64,000 nt of DNA, taken from contig CBFFRP010000435.1 of NCBI GenBank assembly GCA_965644295.1, positions 201,486 through 265,485 of the forward strand, written 5' to 3'. Shown here one piece after another: positions 4,364 through 12,091 of this stretch. The DNA is from Paraphysomonas bandaiensis (Eukaryota; Protista; Chrysophyceae). Within the stretch, counting starts at the first letter, position 1, and every line of letters starts with the position of its first letter. The notes beneath the pieces are model-generated. The model worked only from the letters and a program-made list of their open reading frames with translations, was not told the DNA's origin and ran no database searches. A program made the position numbers and the translations under genes.

Positions 4364-5197
4364 TTATTTATATGGCATAATTATACGTTTCAATGACTCT
4401 GATCGTTGCATTGCCAGTCTAGCAGTATCAGGGTTGATGAAAGACAACAGCTTGTCGACGTCAGCTTGAGCGAACTGCTCTACAATTTTCCACATCGACG
4501 GGTCTCTAGATATATTAATAATACATTCAGGATCCAGTCCTTTTCTAACTACGCTAGGTGCACAAGCAATTGTCCCAGGTGACAGAACCAAACAATGTAC
4601 AAAAACCTCTGCCACTAACTGGTCCTGTTGGATGACTTTCAATATTTCATCTAAACATTCCTTAAAACGTTCTTCACTCGCGTTTTCCCCATGACGAACG
4701 TTATAGATAGCAAGCAGTAATTCAATTGATAGTGCATCTGAAATAACGCTACCAGAATTCGTGCATTTACTCCGTATTGAAGATTGTGAAAGTCGAGTCT
4801 CCATAACCTGCATTACCACGGACGTGGTATATTCCGCTGCACTACTGGGAGACCTGTGCTTCAAATACTGGCCAAAACATTCTCCAAGAACCTCTGACGC
4901 TTTCTCGTTCCATGATAGTAATGGAGATGAAATAATAGCTCTAAATATACAATCGTGGGGTGCGCTTATTATGCCTGCTATACTCATGTCCAAGAATGAA
5001 ACATCTGCTATTTTAACTTTATCTTGTACGCTTTCAGCACACACCTGATTTCCATACTTCGATACTAAGCTTGCCCATTTGAAACTCTTAGTAACAGTAA
5101 TTGGAGTCCAATTTAAGAACTTTAAGCTTCTTGTCATATGTAACACATTGAAGAACGTTACGATATATTTCTCAATAGATTCTTGCGGCGGAGACAT
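4364..5197 (-). CDS. Hypothetical protein with FANCF-like N-terminus
   Basis: 277-aa ORF. FFNVLHMTRSLKFLNWTPITVTKSFKWA resembles, from memory, the FANCF N-terminal pattern F..LL..S.....W....V..A..WA. Confidence 0.5.
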   Translation of the reverse strand: MSPPQESIEKYIVTFFNVLHMTRSLKFLNWTPITVTKSFKWASLVSKYGNQVCAESVQDKVKIADVSFLDMSIAGIISAPHDCIFRAIISSPLLSWNEKASEVLGECFGQYLKHRSPSSAAEYTTSVVMQVMETRLSQSSIRSKCTNSGSVISDALSIELLLAIYNVRHGENASEERFKECLDEILKVIQQDQLVAEVFVHCLVLSPGTIACAPSVVRKGLDPECIINISRDPSMWKIVEQFAQADVDKLLSFINPDTARLAMQRSESLKRIIMPYK

Positions 5198-5752
5198 GAA
5201 ACTGTACCCAGCAGATCGGTTGATATCGATTCGCTGGATTCACATCTCATAGCAAATGCTGATTGTGATATTTAGAGCCCCCATCTATGACTATATAAGA
5301 CACTGAGTTACTGTATTGTAATATACACACACAGTATATACTGTTGCACGTACACACGTATATCATACGGCCTGTATATCAGAATACCGTATCTACAGTA
5401 TACATACCGTATTCTACCTCACCATCTAAATATTTTTCCAAGAAATTTGTTTCAACTGTTGCCAATATTTGGTTGAAGATATCACAGTTTTGGAGTTCGA
5501 GAGTGATGTAATGTACATATCCTGGTGGTGTGTGTGGTGCTGGGCTACTATAAAAATTGTTCGAGATCATTTTGACCTGATACAAATACCACTCTCCTAT
5601 ATATATATACTGTACTACAGTATCTACAGCTGTGAAGTTCAACACCCTCACCCATATATATATACATACCACAGCACACCAGATCCTCCATACTCCACCC
5701 TCTCACTCCACTATTATGAACTAGGAAAGAACTCACATCATATACTATACAT

Positions 5753-8700
5753 ATGATGTGGATAGGAGTATTACTTTATCTCCCTCTATTAACTGTGATT
5801 AAAGGATTCTCTCTCAGTGATTACTTTAAGATCTCTGATAGTTTTACGGGTTATATAGATAACACTGTAGAGTATCATCCATATGATGTATATATCCAAG
5901 TTAATAGGGCAGATTTTCAATGGGTGTTACTTGGACAAACACGGAAGTGTCAGATACGAGTCGAGCATAGCCCATGGATGGATAGTAAGATATCTCTACA
6001 GGGTCGATCCAGTAGATTTCTACCATTACCAAAGAAACCCTATAAAGTCAGAATGTCTACTGAAGATGGGGTTAATCATGAGCTTGTATTCAAACATTCC
6101 TATGAAGATCCATCTTTTTCTCGAGAAAAGTTGGCTCAAGATGTGGTAATGAACACTGATGGTATGTCTATAGCTGTTACTCATGTTAACCTCTATATAA
6201 ATGGCGAGTACAACGGATTGTATCAGATGAGGGAGACTGTTGAGGTTAAGATGCTTCATAGATGGTTTGGAAAGCAACCAGAGGTGTGGTACAATGTCGC
6301 TGACCAGTACGGTATTGATGTTATCACACCTGCTGGAGAACAATTTACAACTAACTTGAAGAAACTGGAAAGAGCAGACACCAGCAGTAAATTCGAACTC
6401 ACAAAGCCTCTCTACGATCTCTCTAACAAGTCTGTTCCTATGCACGCTGTTGTTAATCTTACATCCCTGAATGCGGTATTGATATCTATGAAACTTTTGC
6501 TTATTACAGACGTCTCGGTGCGAAATTTCTTTCTTGCAGTTGATCCAGATACATCCTTGATACACACGATATTATGGGACGCAGATCAAACACTTGGTGT
6601 CCATCAAAACGAGGGCGCTTCTATCGAAGTCTCACCCCAATTACCTTATTTCAAAGCTGTTGGTCGTAAGTTGTGGCCATCGTCTAAAGAAAAAATCTTT
6701 AGCGGAACGAACGCTGGGCGCACCGAGTACGATACATATAATGATACCGTCTATCGGGTAATGGACAAACCGGATGGTGCGCTGAGTGTAGACTCTTTAA
6801 AAAAATTTACGGAAACAATGCGACGCGCTCTTGCGCCTTCTGCGAAGAAAGATGCGGATAAATGGAGTGGATGGTACTGCGCTGGACGTATGGATTTTGA
6901 CAGTGCTATGGAAGAGATGGAGACCGTACTTTTGGCACGTCGTCACAATTACTTGGCGGGAGATACTGGGGATCAGATTGAGGGAAACTTCTACAAGCCT
7001 TATGGATGTGATGACCAGTATGTAGGGAAAGCAGACAGCGGCATGCTTCTTTTTCTCACTTTGGTGCTATGTATAAATAGCGTTGCCTTCTTGGTGCCTT
7101 CATCTCTCCCTATGTCACTTGTATCCAAAACCGAACCTATTTCTTTCAAGCAACTGTACTCCACTATATTGCCGAGTTATATGCAAGATTGTAAGGAACG
7201 ACTACTTATGTACGATTACTGGTTGAATGTTTGTGTGGCTCTTCTTCTTTACTTCGGCTATAAGGTGTACGCCTTCTACGATGTACTTGATGACTCTGAG
7301 ATTCTAGGCAATGAGTATATGGCCGATGTAAAGTATATATGGATATACTTCGCAGTTGCTATCAATGTCACCTTTCTTGTTCGCAACAATATTTTTCGGG
7401 TTGTAATGTGGATAATCATAGTGGTCTTCACTAATATATACACTATTATTGATCTAGTAGAGTTCGTGGGTGCTGAAAGCGATGAAAGTTCAGTTAACAG
7501 TAAGGGTATATCAATATCGGTGGACAATGCGGACTATCCCGCTGTTTTTGCCCTTTTTGTAGCCTGGAGAGTAACTTCGCAGTTCGTTATCATGGCCTAC
7601 AGTCTGCGCATTCCTAGCATATCTCGTGAAATAACCTTGTTCCTTGATGCATATGATCTTGGCAAGGGAATTGTGAAGGCTTCGCTTCTGGAGCTATCTG
7701 CGGTTAAGATTGTAAAACGTGATGCAGTTGTACCACATTTGACTTCGCGTGAAGGAGACTTAAGTGGCTCTAATAGCTGTGAACATAACCAATGTGAAGA
7801 TGACGGGATTTCGAAGGAGAAACCAGCTGAGTGGAATGAAGCAGAAGAAACATCCCTACCAGACGAGTGTTGCCAGGATCTGGAAATGTGTAATTATGCT
7901 GTATTAGGATCCGATATACCGCGTGAAAATACACTTGAATGCGAGCCTACTGTAAAAAACTCCGTTGAAAATAACGCTGAGCAACGCGCTGCCTATAAGA
8001 AGTCAATGAAATCATTCATGCGCCTCAACATGGCTGTTTTTATTGCAATATGTGTCGCTTTCATAATCTATATCGGGGTCAAAGGCAAGCTCAAGAAGGT
8101 TGCGAGTGATATATTCTTTTCGACGTTTCTTTCCATTGCTATCCTGATAAATATTCGCGCATTTTACTCATGCTGCAAGTGGTTCTGGCTCTTTGCATAT
8201 GGATTTGATACGTCAGCATTGGATATAATGTTTAGTAGCAGAGATAATGATGACACCTGGTCCCTTTCTGCTGTCAAGACAATGCCTGTTGTAACCCGTC
8301 AGACGCCCTTCAATTACTTGCTACCCTTTCAAGCGTTATCAACAGAGAAAAAGGTACGCGCTGTAGATGGATGGATCAAAAAGTTTGCACATACATACGA
8401 TGGTCTGCTTGTTTTCGTCTTGAGTGCTGAAAGCTTCAGTCATGGTGGGAATTCCATAGAAACATACAGCCTCGCCTATGCGATATCACTGATATACATG
8501 ATCATATATGTTTTGACTTATAGTAGCAACAACAGCTGGTCGTGGATAATGTACGGTGCCAAGGCTCGTATCATGGATGGTTATTTGGGGAGGGAGAACG
8601 AGATATTCGGGTACATGTTCGACAAATATATGCTACCAGTCTCAGCCCCATTGTTGTTATGGCTCAATGGTATTGCTCATGGCGAAAACGAAATTATCTA

Positions 8701-9037
8701 CTTAACATGGTACATTTTTATGCCCATCATTATTGGGGACTCATTTGCGGAGATTGTGGGTGGTACTTGGGGAAAGCAACGCATCAAAGTGTTTGGAATG
8801 GGGGAGGAGAACAAGAAGAGTTGGGAAGGGACAATCGCGATGTTTGCGAGCAGTTTTATCATTCTGGTCGTAGTTAACATCTACGCGGGACTTGCTTGGC
8901 ATTGGTATTTATTTGCATTCATCAATTGTATTGTTGCCACAGTCGTAGAACTCTACGCATATCGGAGCACTGACAATGTATGCATGCTTCTGCTAAGTTC
9001 CTTATTAGCAGTTGCGTATGTCACTATAAAAAGTTAG
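5753..9037 (+). CDS. Signal peptide + CotH kinase domain + multipass TM region + CTP-dependent dolichol/phytol kinase-like domain
   Basis: CotH motifs GRSS..PKKPYKV, DPSFSREKL, VNLYINGEYNGLY, D..RNFFL and WDADQTLG. C-terminal KKFAH, GDSFAEIVG..WG, KKSWEG and E......DN are typical of SEC59/VTE5/DGK1-type kinases. Single 1094-aa ORF. Confidence 0.85.
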   Translation: MMWIGVLLYLPLLTVIKGFSLSDYFKISDSFTGYIDNTVEYHPYDVYIQVNRADFQWVLLGQTRKCQIRVEHSPWMDSKISLQGRSSRFLPLPKKPYKVRMSTEDGVNHELVFKHSYEDPSFSREKLAQDVVMNTDGMSIAVTHVNLYINGEYNGLYQMRETVEVKMLHRWFGKQPEVWYNVADQYGIDVITPAGEQFTTNLKKLERADTSSKFELTKPLYDLSNKSVPMHAVVNLTSLNAVLISMKLLLITDVSVRNFFLAVDPDTSLIHTILWDADQTLGVHQNEGASIEVSPQLPYFKAVGRKLWPSSKEKIFSGTNAGRTEYDTYNDTVYRVMDKPDGALSVDSLKKFTETMRRALAPSAKKDADKWSGWYCAGRMDFDSAMEEMETVLLARRHNYLAGDTGDQIEGNFYKPYGCDDQYVGKADSGMLLFLTLVLCINSVAFLVPSSLPMSLVSKTEPISFKQLYSTILPSYMQDCKERLLMYDYWLNVCVALLLYFGYKVYAFYDVLDDSEILGNEYMADVKYIWIYFAVAINVTFLVRNNIFRVVMWIIIVVFTNIYTIIDLVEFVGAESDESSVNSKGISISVDNADYPAVFALFVAWRVTSQFVIMAYSLRIPSISREITLFLDAYDLGKGIVKASLLELSAVKIVKRDAVVPHLTSREGDLSGSNSCEHNQCEDDGISKEKPAEWNEAEETSLPDECCQDLEMCNYAVLGSDIPRENTLECEPTVKNSVENNAEQRAAYKKSMKSFMRLNMAVFIAICVAFIIYIGVKGKLKKVASDIFFSTFLSIAILINIRAFYSCCKWFWLFAYGFDTSALDIMFSSRDNDDTWSLSAVKTMPVVTRQTPFNYLLPFQALSTEKKVRAVDGWIKKFAHTYDGLLVFVLSAESFSHGGNSIETYSLAYAISLIYMIIYVLTYSSNNSWSWIMYGAKARIMDGYLGRENEIFGYMFDKYMLPVSAPLLLWLNGIAHGENEIIYLTWYIFMPIIIGDSFAEIVGGTWGKQRIKVFGMGEENKKSWEGTIAMFASSFIILVVVNIYAGLAWHWYLFAFINCIVATVVELYAYRSTDNVCMLLLSSLLAVAYVTIKS

Positions 9038-9339
9038 ACTATTATCGAGTATCTGTACCTACTGACAAAGTCTCGAATCCCTTTTTATGACGAAATTCAC
9101 TGCTTGCTGATTTGACAATATAGATAACTGTATATTTTTTATTATTCAATTATAACGTGGCGATAATAATATCAAAGTAATATATTTGAAATATATATCT
9201 ACCGTAATGCTGGTCGTTATACTATAGGCAAGTTTACGTAGCTCAATATTTTTAATTCTTAAAAATTTAGGCAATTACATACAAAACTAAGTTAGGAATT
9301 GAAAACAATCGCGAGCATATATCGAACTATGATTATATT

Positions 9340-9739: not shown

Positions 9740-12091
9740 CTACGTCAGTATTATTGTCGATATTCCTGACGCAATTGCAGCCAAAGCAAACTCCTTGCAG
9801 GATATACTATGTGACGTTGTAATCGAATGACCAGTCATTTCTGAAATATATATGGTAAAAATGTCGCATACTCAAAGTGTACTATGTGCATAAATACAAA
9901 CCTCTATCAGACGACTCACGGAATTCACATGAAGTTCGGTCAGAATCAATAGATCTCTCGTCAATGCCCAGTGATCGACCAAGGGTACAAGAGACAGGCA
10001 TCTCACCGATAATTAGGAAGTCAGGAGAATATGCAAGTGATTCTTTCACGAATTCTGAGACGACAGATTCGCGATCAGCATAAATACTCTAAATAATATA
10101 CATCAAATCAGCACTAATATACAGTATATGTAACCTTCATATCATAGCCTTGATCTCTATAAGTTTTGCAAAAATCGTATACATGAGAATGATTGACTTT
10201 CTTTTCCGTTTGGGACTCTAGCAGTCCGACGTGAATCAATACCAAGTTATCTCCTTGTTTCGCAAGGCATCTCGCGTACTAACACAATACCTCAATAACA
10301 CAGTAATAGCTATGTGACTAGTGCACTTGCCTTGAACGCATGACAGAGTTCGCCGCTGTTTGTAGGTATGCCTACAACAAAAGTTCTTTTGGACTGATAA
10401 AATTTCTCCTTTGTAAAATGGGGCAAGCACAAAACGGCTAAATCCACACGATGGGCACTTGCATTACGAAGAATGTCTTCCGCTAATGGAATCGACCCAC
10501 TGTGAGTAGTTACAACTAGGGGAAGAGTACCCGAACTACTGTTATACAAGCTATTAATTGTGCGCCTCGTCTCTTTCGCACACTTGTCTTTAGCGAACCG
10601 ATTCGTGAACTCATTTTTATTCGGTTCCGGCGAGTTCAGAAGTGACCAAATATGAGGAAATACTCTTGTATATGTCTCAGATAACAAATTTGGTTGAGAG
10701 GTAGTGCTTGAACGAGTTGCCTGACTGCTTGTCGTACAGCGATCAAAATTGACCGGCCCTGGGTCAACAATGCGTACCGAAAAGAGAGGGGATGATTCCC
10801 GACTAAGAGCGAGAACATTAGTTTTCCACGCTTCTTTAAGCACTTGTGAGCTATACGATATAGTTGTGCGGGGACTACTGAAGCAATCTTTATCGCCTAA
10901 AATCTCATTGTCGTATGGGCACACCGCTCTAGATGGCACAGTACAAATCGATGACATACTGTGTATATAATTGACACTACTGGAGAAACGTCTATGAACA
11001 GTACCTCCTGTACTAAGAGACGAAGCTTCTACTGAAGGATCACATGTTTGACAAATGAGATTAAGATGGTCGTATGCATGGCATAGCGACAGAGCACTTT
11101 GTACAAGACACATGCACGAGCACATCTCCCCGTTCTGTTTACATTGCGACGCACATAACTCTGGCCCTACAATCACAACAACTTGTTTGGAGAAGGTGGT
11201 ACGGTGACTGCGACTGGTGCTTTCTGTAGAATGTTCTCCAGAAGCATCACAACATCTTGAAGTGGCCACGCGTTGACCAGTCTCTTGCATCATAATATCC
11301 GAGCAGCGAACGCCTCTTGATATTCCGTCCACAACACCCAGCACCCACTGCGAAATTTTATGATGCATATCGGTGCGACAAATATAGGAATTGCTACGAA
11401 ATATCTCCCGATCCAATGTTCGCTTCAGAGCCCGCAACATAGATCGTGGGAAGGCTTTATGAGTGAAGACACGGTCTTGGGCGATTGTATTCAGAGCTAC
11501 AACTGTATCTGATGGCATTGTCCGGCATAGAACATCATCGCGAAACACACACCAATCAAACATATGCATACTCATTTTTAGAGTAACTCCATGTTGTACC
11601 ATGTGGGTTTGAAAAGCTCTCCAGAATCTTATTAGTCTAGTCCTTTCTAAAGGTGACAAAGACAAGTGATCCGTGAGCATATTCCCCTCGCCACTCTCCC
11701 AATCACTCCCCTGTGACCCACTGTTCCTTTCAGTGATTTCTATGTCTACTTCGAGTACCTGACGCATTATTACCGCAAAGTAAGATACAAGTATGCCGTA
11801 AAGACACTTCATCGCAGTGTTAACTTTGAGTGGTAAGACATTAAACTTAGACCACTCCTTTATATCACAGGCCTCTATTACACTGATCGGCTCAACAGGA
11901 GTCTCCATCAGCTGTATAGGCTTTATTTTACGTCCTTTCACTCTGCTGGTGAGTGGTTTACCCCCCTCTATCCTCTTAATCCCCACAGTGGGATCTGTTT
12001 CATGAGTGGGCTGTTTATTTATATCATAGAGCCTCTTTAACTCGAAGAAAATCTTCTGACTACGAGTACAGGGGTAGCTATGAATAGGCAT
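9740..12091 (-). CDS. Protein with degenerate tandem universal-stress-protein (USP)-like domains; multi-exon
   Basis: The 593-aa ORF continues through a GC-AG intron (10279-10330) into YARCLAKQGDNLVLIHV. RTFVVGI, LAEDILRNA..DLAVL and PDFLIIG are USP-like. 3' end approximate. Confidence 0.55.

Follow-up and report, generated by a model that had tools for sequence, protein, structure and literature searches.

To our knowledge, CotH kinases are understood in two settings only, the spore coat of Bacillus and invasion by Mucorales. The CotH proteins of Mucorales are GPI-anchored or secreted, have a single domain, and come from multigene families. CTP-dependent lipid kinases govern the supply of dolichyl phosphate, which is limiting for all protein glycosylation. 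Paraphysomonas is a silica-scaled flagellate and an abundant marine bacterivore. In dolichol kinases, a variable N-domain precedes a conserved catalytic C-domain whose active site faces the cytoplasm (PMC11542857). The literature searched yielded neither a pairing of CotH with a dolichol, phytol, or polyprenol kinase nor a description of CotH in stramenopiles. In the 64,000-nucleotide stretch of Paraphysomonas bandaiensis DNA analyzed here (the window), one gene is predicted to combine both activities. Our preferred reading, to which we assign a probability of roughly 0.63, is that this single gene encodes a bifunctional membrane protein with 14 helices, in which a secreted-type CotH kinase and a predicted CTP-type lipid kinase are joined across the membrane. 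The domain architecture is new and the component families are known.

The gene is an intronless open reading frame of 1,094 amino acids (aa) with an ATG start, located at 5753..9037 on the + strand of the window, in agreement with the position and length given in the initial annotation. These coordinates comprise the complete coding sequence and its stop codon; 11 more in-frame codons lie upstream before a stop is reached, such that the open frame extends to 1,105 aa. A single mRNA carries the gene. In four studies, metatranscriptome contigs are confined to 5639..9183 (+); beyond these limits the depth is zero, and splice joints are absent. They indicate an approximate, intron-free transcript whose 5' UTR measures at least 114 nt and whose 3' UTR measures about 80–146 nt. 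These contigs were built from short reads and alone do not prove a single molecule. A Paraphysomonas transcript contig from MMETSP (99% identical) spans residues 101–1050, and the RNA contig X1 runs from 6918 to 8769 and crosses domain boundaries, which contradicts the scenario of two separate transcripts that had been considered at the outset. Because the gene is seen in the metatranscriptomes of several studies, it is active in nature. No compositional trace of recent transfer was found, as the GC content of the gene (0.42–0.43) lies within the range seen elsewhere in the first 16 kb (0.32–0.48).

The N-terminal part begins with a putative signal peptide or hydrophobic segment (residues 1–19; 5753..5809, +; hydropathy 1.78), and a hydrophobic start is present in all seven full-length homologs. 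It is followed by the CotH domain, which covers residues 81–397 according to Pfam (5993..6943, +) and probably extends over about 20–425. PF08757 matches with 82.3 bits against a cut-off of 23.8 (E = 6e-23), covering profile positions 2–319 of 322, and the solved B. cereus CotH 5jd9 is matched with E = 2e-4. The putative catalytic loop D253-x4-N258 (6509..6526, +) is invariant in the full-length alignment and aligns to D-G-F-V-H-N of 5jd9, with D253 corresponding to D228 of B. subtilis CotH. The putative metal-binding motif W275-D276-A-D278 (6575..6586, +), in which W, D, and D are invariant in the full-length alignment, aligns to WDYD of 5jd9, and D276 corresponds to B. subtilis D251. D253 and D276 are invariant across the seven full-length members, and the spacing of 23 between them is that between D228 and D251 of B. 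subtilis CotH. Mutants of B. subtilis CotH at D228 (including D228Q) and D251 are inactive (PMC7821199). Judged by its sequence, this is a CotH-family kinase domain with its predicted catalytic residues intact, and the signal peptide and the WDAD-bearing CotH kinase proposed earlier are both upheld. Possible lumenal features include the invariant cysteines C376 and C419 and, at N225, an N-x-S sequon that is conserved for the most part.

Compared with Bacillus CotH, an atypical Ser/Thr kinase of the spore coat (5jd9/5jda), the domain shares the D..N and W-D-x-D residues with identical spacing. However, it differs in its signal peptide, the 14 attached membrane helices, the eukaryotic host, and a strong divergence, as its match to the solved structure (5jd9) scores only some 23 bits. 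The CotH invasins of Mucorales are likewise eukaryotic CotH domains that enter the secretory pathway, whereas the Paraphysomonas domain is single-copy, being the only CotH in the 62.6-Mb genome, and is fused to a polytopic enzyme. When the CotH domain by itself was used in a word search, no stand-alone relatives were recovered; the three matches were one 509-aa homolog of nearly the full CotH domain and two short fragments.

A highly conserved linker (residues 430–805; 7040..8167, +) connects the two domains. By family-averaged hydropathy it contains seven membrane helices, at about 430–448, 488–508, 526–545, 550–570, 597–617, 757–776, and 785–805, and the C-terminal domain contains seven further helices by the same measure. 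Between the fifth and sixth linker helices lies a variable acidic loop (residues 618–757; 7604..8023, +; 26 D+E versus 17 K+R), which is predicted to be cytoplasmic. Its length differs between homologs and it is missing in the two most diverged ones (P0013 and P0017). The roughly seven additional helices and the acidic loop of the initial annotation are thus borne out. The topology is based on hydropathy alone, and the short turn that connects helices 6 and 7, which is rich in lysine, does not cleanly obey the positive-inside rule. The linker matches no Pfam family above cut-off and has no paralog in the genome. DUF7702 was considered as an identity for the linker and was rejected, the match having only 15.8 bits.

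The C-terminal domain (residues 864–1094; 8342..9034, +; 231 aa with seven helices) is assigned from profiles, model, and motifs as a CTP_transf_1-superfamily domain resembling kinase-type lipid enzymes. All four of the motifs expected here (KxxH, GD..A..VG, KSWEG, and DN) were recovered. The [RK]KxxH motif is K876-K877-x-x-H880 (KKFAH; 8378..8392, +), in which H880 is nearly invariant among 69 family members. G995-D996-x-x-A-x-x-x-G1003 (GDSFAEIVG; 8735..8761, +) has invariant D, E, and G and aligns to its counterparts in the CDP-DAG synthase of the same genome and in a small paralog. K1022-S-W-E-G1026 (8816..8830, +) follows a beta-hairpin, and its spacing from D996–G1003 resembles that in the small paralog. 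The last motif, E1066..R1071-S-T-D1074-N1075 (8948..8977, +), has invariant E, R, and D, and its counterpart in the paralog is DN-L-T-I-P. In addition, a subfamily-specific R-I-R-D-G..N motif (R939..D942-G943..N949; 8567..8599, +) has R, D, and N invariant in 69 sequences. Altogether, 14 residues, mostly charged, are invariant in the 69 C-domain sequences, including D996, E1000, G1003, K1022, G1026, and D1074. The C-terminal 350 residues are 61–66% identical among close homologs, compared with 43–50% for the whole protein.

Pfam by itself does not place this domain. PF01148 (CTP_transf_1) gives 20.7–21.5 bits against a cut-off of 24, and this on short slices only; it matches neither a 350-aa slice nor any of the six fused homologs tested, and only two of the 44 A3 sequences match. 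The small kinase-type paralog of the same genome also falls under the PF01148 cut-off (9.9 bits), so the model is insensitive to the kinase-type branch. Searches of PDB sequences with one C-domain sequence and with two profiles of the domain found no match, and NCBIfam models found nothing relevant in the whole protein, the C-domain, or the 69 family members. With hhalign, the C-domain matches the small paralog, which serves as the kinase-type reference and is itself uncharacterized, with a probability of 97.3% (E = 1.9e-11). The C-domain profile A4 matches the genome's own CDP-DAG synthase (PF01148 E = 2.4e-47) with a probability of 80.6% (E = 1.3e-5); with a second such synthase, the motif alone is matched (probability 3%).

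A first AF2 model of residues 745–1094 from a seven-sequence alignment had a pLDDT of 64 and a weak top match to CdsA; it was superseded by a C-domain model from a 69-sequence alignment with a pLDDT of 92 and a pTM of 0.87. In the Atlas, this fold has a TM-score of 0.92 to a cluster named as a phosphatidate cytidylyltransferase family and 0.70 to one named as a diacylglycerol/polyprenol kinase family, these names being automatic labels on clusters that lack a common Pfam family. Among 48,161 PDB chains, CarS (5guf) ranks second (Z = 7.3) and CdsA (4q2e) fifth (Z = 6.7), with VIA Z scores of about 7 lying under the trust level of the tool for helical bundles. The highest-ranked structure is the transmembrane domain of MgtE (Z = 8.2), and TRIC channels are also among the matches. 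Foldseek comparisons of the C-domain models with the PDB gave nothing significant (E about 0.05–0.2). By language-model features, a cluster called "Dolichol kinase family protein" comes closest (score 0.90). The profile–profile matches, the fold model, and the motifs place the C-domain in the CdsA/CarS/dolichol-kinase (CTP_transf_1) superfamily. Both domain assignments of the initial annotation therefore hold, although not on equal terms: CotH is clear by HMM and catalytic residues, whereas the C-domain stays under the Pfam threshold and its assignment narrowly survives through hhalign, fold, and motifs.

Within this superfamily, the motif set of the C-domain is that of the kinase branch (SEC59/DGK1/VTE5-like) and not of the cytidylyltransferase branch. 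By regular-expression search, both CDP-DAG synthases of the genome contain KRx4KD..PGHGG..DRxD but neither [RK]KxxH nor DN, and the reverse is true of the C-domain and the small paralog. The CDP-DAG synthase CdsA and the CDP-archaeol synthase CarS are probably of the same fold class at 16% identity and share the D-x-x-A-x-x-x-G...K-[ST]-x-E-G segment with the C-domain, but the synthase signature is absent from the latter. SEC59/DOLK are similar in layout, with a variable multi-helix N-region preceding the conserved catalytic C-domain, and in the common motif set [RK]KxxH, GDxxAxxxG, K[ST]xEG, and DN. They differ from the C-domain of the fusion in that the latter has the extra invariant R-I-R-D-G..N and a longer hairpin (G-x-G-E-x-N-x-K-S), and stand-alone proteins of bacteria are closest to it in sequence. 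For the yeast diacylglycerol kinase Dgk1 and the plant phytol/farnesol kinases VTE5/FOLK, one likeness lies in domain size, which is roughly 230–300 aa in stand-alone relatives, and VTE5 presumably resembles the C-domain in its motifs. The essential aspartate D177 of Dgk1 appears to be kept as D996. The D177A mutation in yeast Dgk1 abolishes CTP-dependent kinase activity (PMC2459266).

Several protist lineages have kept the architecture as a fusion. Homologs were found with E-values down to 0, well outside what chance would give. P0002-5, P0013, and P0017 are full-length fused proteins, and the fusion occurs in three diverged subclades. In the Tara scaffold L007, all three parts are present in separate exons; the exons of L007 and of L004 were compared one by one. 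The fusion is nevertheless rare, with about seven clusters (at 50% identity) among 1.84 billion representatives, and the pairing was not found in the literature searched. The objection foreseen in the initial annotation, that the architecture might prove common and characterized, is thus not borne out. For the C-terminal part, there are 232 relatives at E <= 1e-3. The C-domains of the fused members form one clade with an SH-aLRT of 99, in a quick, midpoint-rooted tree for which SH-aLRT was the only support measure. The nearest stand-alone relatives are uncharacterized proteins of Cyanobacteria, Vicinamibacteria, and Desulfobacterales; one relative bears the JGI name "dolichol kinase." Among the relatives compared, the C-domain is probably a derived offshoot of an uncharacterized subfamily that is mostly bacterial, and not an ortholog of SEC59, VTE5, or DGK1. 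The fusion may offer an entry into this large CTP_transf_1-like subfamily, for which Pfam matches are at most weak and below cut-off. In the gene neighborhoods of 80 bacterial stand-alone relatives, no CotH open reading frame was detected within 8 kb on either side with a narrow HMM derived from the fused family. No conserved operon was found around these 80 either; the recurrent neighbors (GGT, Ser/Thr kinase, ABC, and TonB-type) were confined to close relatives. One bacterial stand-alone relative sits downstream of lpxD-fabZ-lpxA.

Several alternatives to a protein with two kinases deserve consideration. That the fusion is an artifact, with two neighboring genes read as one or a chimeric assembly, is scarcely credible: nothing was found in its favor beyond the inability of short-read contigs alone to prove a single molecule, and it would have to accommodate 1,094 codons without a stop, the MMETSP and X1 contigs across domain boundaries, and the recurrence of the architecture in independent metagenomes and three subclades. 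A different question is whether the CotH domain is an enzyme at all, as it could instead serve for binding or sensing, in the lumen or outside the cell, and thereby regulate the lipid enzyme, so that the whole would be a receptor-like enzyme. The invasin role of Mucorales CotH proteins provides a parallel, the N-terminal regions of dolichol kinase vary and are believed to have a regulatory role (PMC11542857), and the domain is very diverged, at 23 bits to solved CotH and with no stand-alone relatives recovered by word search. Against this stands the invariance of the Asp/Asn catalytic loop and the W-D-x-D site in members that are only 26–28% identical overall, a pattern expected of an active kinase and needless for a binding module. 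We regard this alternative as quite unlikely.

For the C-terminal half, the reading as a mere polytopic anchor or a non-catalytic, transporter-like module takes its support from MgtE and the TRIC channels in the PDB search. It is very improbable, as the 14 invariant residues fall on the catalytic motifs of CTP_transf_1 and this region is more strongly conserved than the protein overall. A more serious competitor, which we still consider unlikely, is other chemistry on the CTP_transf_1 scaffold, either a cytidylyltransferase making a CDP-activated lipid as CdsA and CarS do or another lipid phosphotransfer. The best Atlas neighbors bear a cytidylyltransferase name, structures have been solved for only two relatives, the synthases CarS and CdsA, and the subfamily has its own R-I-R-D-G..N motif without a described function. 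However, the Atlas names are automatic, the signature carried by both CDP-DAG synthases of the genome is missing, and [RK]KxxH and DN are common to the C-domain and the kinase-type paralog.

In the preferred reading of a CotH kinase joined to a lipid kinase, the signal peptide would lead the CotH domain into the secretory lumen or the extracellular space, where it may phosphorylate a secreted protein or glycan with ATP as donor. Because the number of linker helices is odd (seven), all conserved polar motifs of the C-domain would face the cytoplasm and its supply of CTP, and the C-terminus would be exoplasmic like the CotH domain. On the cytoplasmic side, the C-domain would phosphorylate a membrane lipid alcohol, most likely polyprenol or dolichol and possibly diacylglycerol; linker and C-domain together (about 670 aa) would resemble an entire dolichol kinase. 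Fam20 and POMK offer a functional analogy only, as they are also lumenal kinases acting on secreted proteins or glycans, but they have no sequence relationship to this protein and do not carry a fused lipid kinase. A bolder and doubtful extension is that the two halves form one trans-membrane machine, in which a dolichol/polyprenol kinase would supply the lipid-phosphate carrier on the cytosolic side and the lumenal CotH kinase would phosphorylate the products assembled on this carrier, either glycoproteins or lipid-linked glycans, such as material of the scales or the surface of this silica-scaled flagellate. In this extension, the lipid kinase of the fusion may be the main one of the cell, as a search of the genome detects only a single further gene of the kinase type. 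A conserved and expressed protein with such a covalent tie between opposite sides of a membrane would provide a handle on the substrates of eukaryotic CotH kinases and on a possible means to match carrier-lipid supply with secretory modification.

Two other fusions of the same lipid-kinase-like domain were observed in environmental eukaryotes. In P0080, the domain is fused to a Golgi-type galactose-3-O-sulfotransferase, and in P0162 to a GT34 glycosyltransferase and an MFS transporter. Under the bolder extension, the general rule would be that an enzyme modifying glycans in the lumen is physically tied to the phosphorylation of the carrier lipid.

Domain, motif, and fold evidence support structurally the architecture proposed in the initial annotation, in which the fusion protein appears to be a CotH ecto-kinase connected by a multipass region with a CTP_transf_1 domain (C-domain) of the kinase type. 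A literature search found no paper on a CotH and CTP_transf_1-type architecture, and we class it as a new domain architecture assembled from known kinds. The gene is an unbroken open reading frame (ORF) at positions 5753–9037 (+) of the window, which starts with ATG and encodes 1,094 residues; the features described earlier, from the single intronless ORF to the C-terminal motifs, were confirmed in every detail. Its GC content (0.42–0.43) lies inside the range of the first 16 kb of the window (0.32–0.48). The top database match, at 99% identity, is the MMETSP1103 Paraphysomonas transcript-derived protein (taxid 36769, genus Paraphysomonas, Chrysophyceae), which spans residues 101–1050 and crosses both domain boundaries. 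This match identifies the source as a colourless chrysophyte resembling Paraphysomonas. Metatranscriptome contigs from four studies, including a poly(A)-selected one, are confined to 5639–9183 with zero depth in the flanks, and have no joints or indels over this interval; individual RNA contigs bridge 6918–8769 and 7390–9116. Nothing suggests the two separate transcripts that would have contradicted the annotation, and the data indicate one gene with one transcript, though contigs cannot prove a single molecule. Single-base differences at window positions 6083 (C>T), 6869 (G>C), and 7714 (A>T) recur in contigs of different studies and are probably strain polymorphisms in the natural population. 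The flanking ORFs of 277 aa (4364–5197, -) and 593 aa (10310–12091, -) are separated from the fusion gene by AT-rich spacers, in converging or diverging orientation, and lack a significant Pfam match (FANCF reaches 18.9 bits, under its cut-off).

For the CotH half, the Pfam profile (PF08757) matches residues 81–397 nearly completely (82.3 bits vs. a cut-off of 23.8). The B. cereus CotH structure 5jd9 was recovered by sequence (E 2e-4), and its WDYD aligns with the WDAD that the annotation had reported. D253 matches the Asp of D-G-F-V-H-N in this alignment. Among the seven full-length members aligned (identity down to 26%), D253, N258, W275, D276, D278, P-K-K-x-Y at 93–97, and the cysteines C376 and C419 are invariant. 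The 23-residue spacing from D253 to D276 equals that from D228 to D251 in B. subtilis CotH, of which the D228Q and D251A mutants are catalytically dead (PMC7821199). Because of these invariant catalytic residues and their spacing, the domain is read as an active kinase, with residues mapped by alignment. A lumenal or extracellular location is suggested by the N-terminal hydrophobic segment, which every homologue has, by the two invariant cysteines, and by an N-x-S sequon at N225 that all but one of the five closer homologues retain. Only one CotH copy, that of the fusion, is detectable in the genome (assembly of 62.6 Mb in 669 contigs; the window is from contig C435).

Family-averaged hydropathy places seven helices between CotH and the C-domain, in agreement with the approximately seven additional transmembrane segments annotated initially. 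This linker is more conserved than the CotH domain, with motifs including D-V-L-D-D-S-E-I-L-G and K-W-F-W-L, and has neither a Pfam family match nor a paralogue elsewhere in the genome. The annotated acidic loop (residues 618–757) is real but probably a disordered spacer, because it is variable and is absent from the two most diverged members (P0013 and P0017). With CotH exoplasmic, the seven helices that follow would place the segment before the C-domain in the cytoplasm, and all five conserved C-domain motif groups would lie on the cytoplasmic face. This predicted orientation agrees with human dolichol kinase, whose CTP site faces the cytoplasm according to the title of a 2006 paper by Shridas and Waechter that PMC11542857 cites. 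Moreover, dolichol kinases combine a variable, species-specific N-terminal membrane domain with a conserved catalytic C-domain (PMC11542857), a layout common to residues ~425–1094 of the fusion protein.

The annotation had stated that domains unconfirmed by HMM would count against it; HMM confirmation was obtained for CotH but not for the C-domain. Short slices of the latter scored 20.7–21.5 bits against CTP_transf_1, under the 24-bit cut-off, and there was no match on a longer C-terminal slice or in the fused homologues (six tested); the profile matches only two of the 44 sequences in set A3. Homology was therefore checked by other routes. An exhaustive profile search with residues 745–1094 yielded 232 proteins with E ≤ 1e-3, of which the stand-alone ones are ~280–420 aa and cover ~864–1090 in fusion-protein numbering. 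In a 69-sequence alignment, 14 residues are invariant (R939, D942, N949, D996, E1000, G1003, V1013, G1015, N1020, K1022, G1026, E1066, R1071, and D1074), and D872 and H880 are almost so. A six-frame search of the genome found a single small paralogue on contig C377, of which the exon ORF matches the C-domain reciprocally (BLASTP E 9e-10, with 35% identity across 94 residues; hhalign Prob 97.3%, E 1.9e-11). The C-domain profile also aligns with the genome's bona fide CDP-DAG synthase of PF01148 E 2.4e-47 (hhalign Prob 80.6%, E 1.3e-5) over the D-x-x-A-x-x-x-G ... K-[ST]-x-E-G segment. The AlphaFold model from a deep alignment (pLDDT 92, pTM 0.87) has eight helices, seven of membrane length and one short. 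In the ESM Atlas, it resembles bacterial clusters auto-named phosphatidate cytidylyltransferase family (TM 0.92) and a diacylglycerol/polyprenol kinase family cluster (TM 0.70), and by language-model features the nearest cluster is 'dolichol kinase family protein' (score 0.90). Foldseek of the model against the PDB gave nothing significant. In a fold ranking of 48,161 PDB representatives, the superfamily's only two solved members, CarS (5guf, Z 7.3) and CdsA (4q2e, Z 6.7), rank second and fifth with the top identities (16%), although such scores are not high for helical bundles and MgtE heads the list (Z 8.2). From all routes combined, membership in the CTP_transf_1 superfamily is considered established.

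Within this superfamily, the C-domain may be a kinase or a synthase. Two canonical CDP-diacylglycerol synthases are encoded in the genome (L001 on contig C395, PF01148 E 2.4e-47; L002 on C16, E 4.1e-46). Both have the full synthase signature, K-R-x4-K-D ... P-G-H-G-G ... D-R-x-D, and lack [RK]-K-x-x-H and the C-terminal D-N. The fused C-domain and the C377 paralogue have the reverse pattern, with almost identical inter-motif spacing. Such a pattern separates SEC59/Dgk1/VTE5-type CTP-dependent kinases from cytidylyltransferases. Furthermore, D177 of Dgk1, the equivalent of D996, is essential for CTP-dependent kinase activity, as examined with D177A (PMC2459266). Based on the motif pattern and this residue, the kinase type is the best-supported inference. 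The subfamily also has its own invariant motif, R-x-x-D-G ... N. The C377 gene has two exons (L004:1462-2351 (-), i.e., C377:97671-98252 plus an exon upstream); its upstream ORF terminates in R-K-M-F-H, and its downstream ORF (194 aa) contains G-D-x-x-A-x-x-x-G, K-K-S-L-E-G, and D-N-L-T-I-P. It is a candidate dolichol/DAG kinase, and Pfam hardly detects it (9.9 bits).

C-domains were also found in other fusions. In P0080 (JGI metagenome, 587 aa), three helices connect a galactose-3-O-sulfotransferase domain to the C-domain, and in P0162 the C-domain is joined to a GT34 glycosyltransferase as well as an MFS transporter (P0162 and P0063 are JGI environmental sequences of 2,219 and 1,657 aa, respectively). 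The partners in P0080 and P0162 are secretory-pathway carbohydrate enzymes, which provides circumstantial support for a C-domain role in carrier-lipid or glycolipid metabolism. These partners also underlie the speculative reading that CotH and the C-domain work as a coupled machine.

The whole architecture is kept in P0002–P0005 (43–49% identity) and in P0013 and P0017 (26–28%). The 'short' matches P0008–P0011 are middle exons, and the Tara scaffold L007 has the CotH N-part, middle part, and C-terminal part in three consecutive frames (each compared by itself, unjoined). At 50% clustering, fusion representatives number about seven among 1.84 billion. A quick, midpoint-rooted ML tree places the C-domain of every CotH-fused protein, together with two short fragments, in one clade (SH-aLRT 99) nested among stand-alone proteins; this grouping fits a CotH fusion that arose once. 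The closest stand-alone relatives are located in dense bacterial gene neighbourhoods, with hosts among Cyanobacteria, Vicinamibacteria and other Acidobacteriota, Desulfobacterales, and Planctomycetota. The C-domain may be of bacterial origin. A narrow HMM of the fused family detected no adjacent CotH in these neighbourhoods (80 loci, 8 kb on each flank), and they offer no functional clue. The bacterial stand-alone family itself is widespread (~300 aa; P0019–P0044), with 96 ORFs in 80 loci (L017–L096) and two copies at some of them. The motifs R-I-R-D-G, G-E-I-N-x-K-S, and T-D-x-F are invariant in this family, and the members tested have at most weak sub-threshold Pfam/NCBIfam matches. In one metagenomic bacterium (L013:5690-8909), the stand-alone relative P0028 lies immediately 3' of lpxD-fabZ-lpxA, a lipid A cluster.
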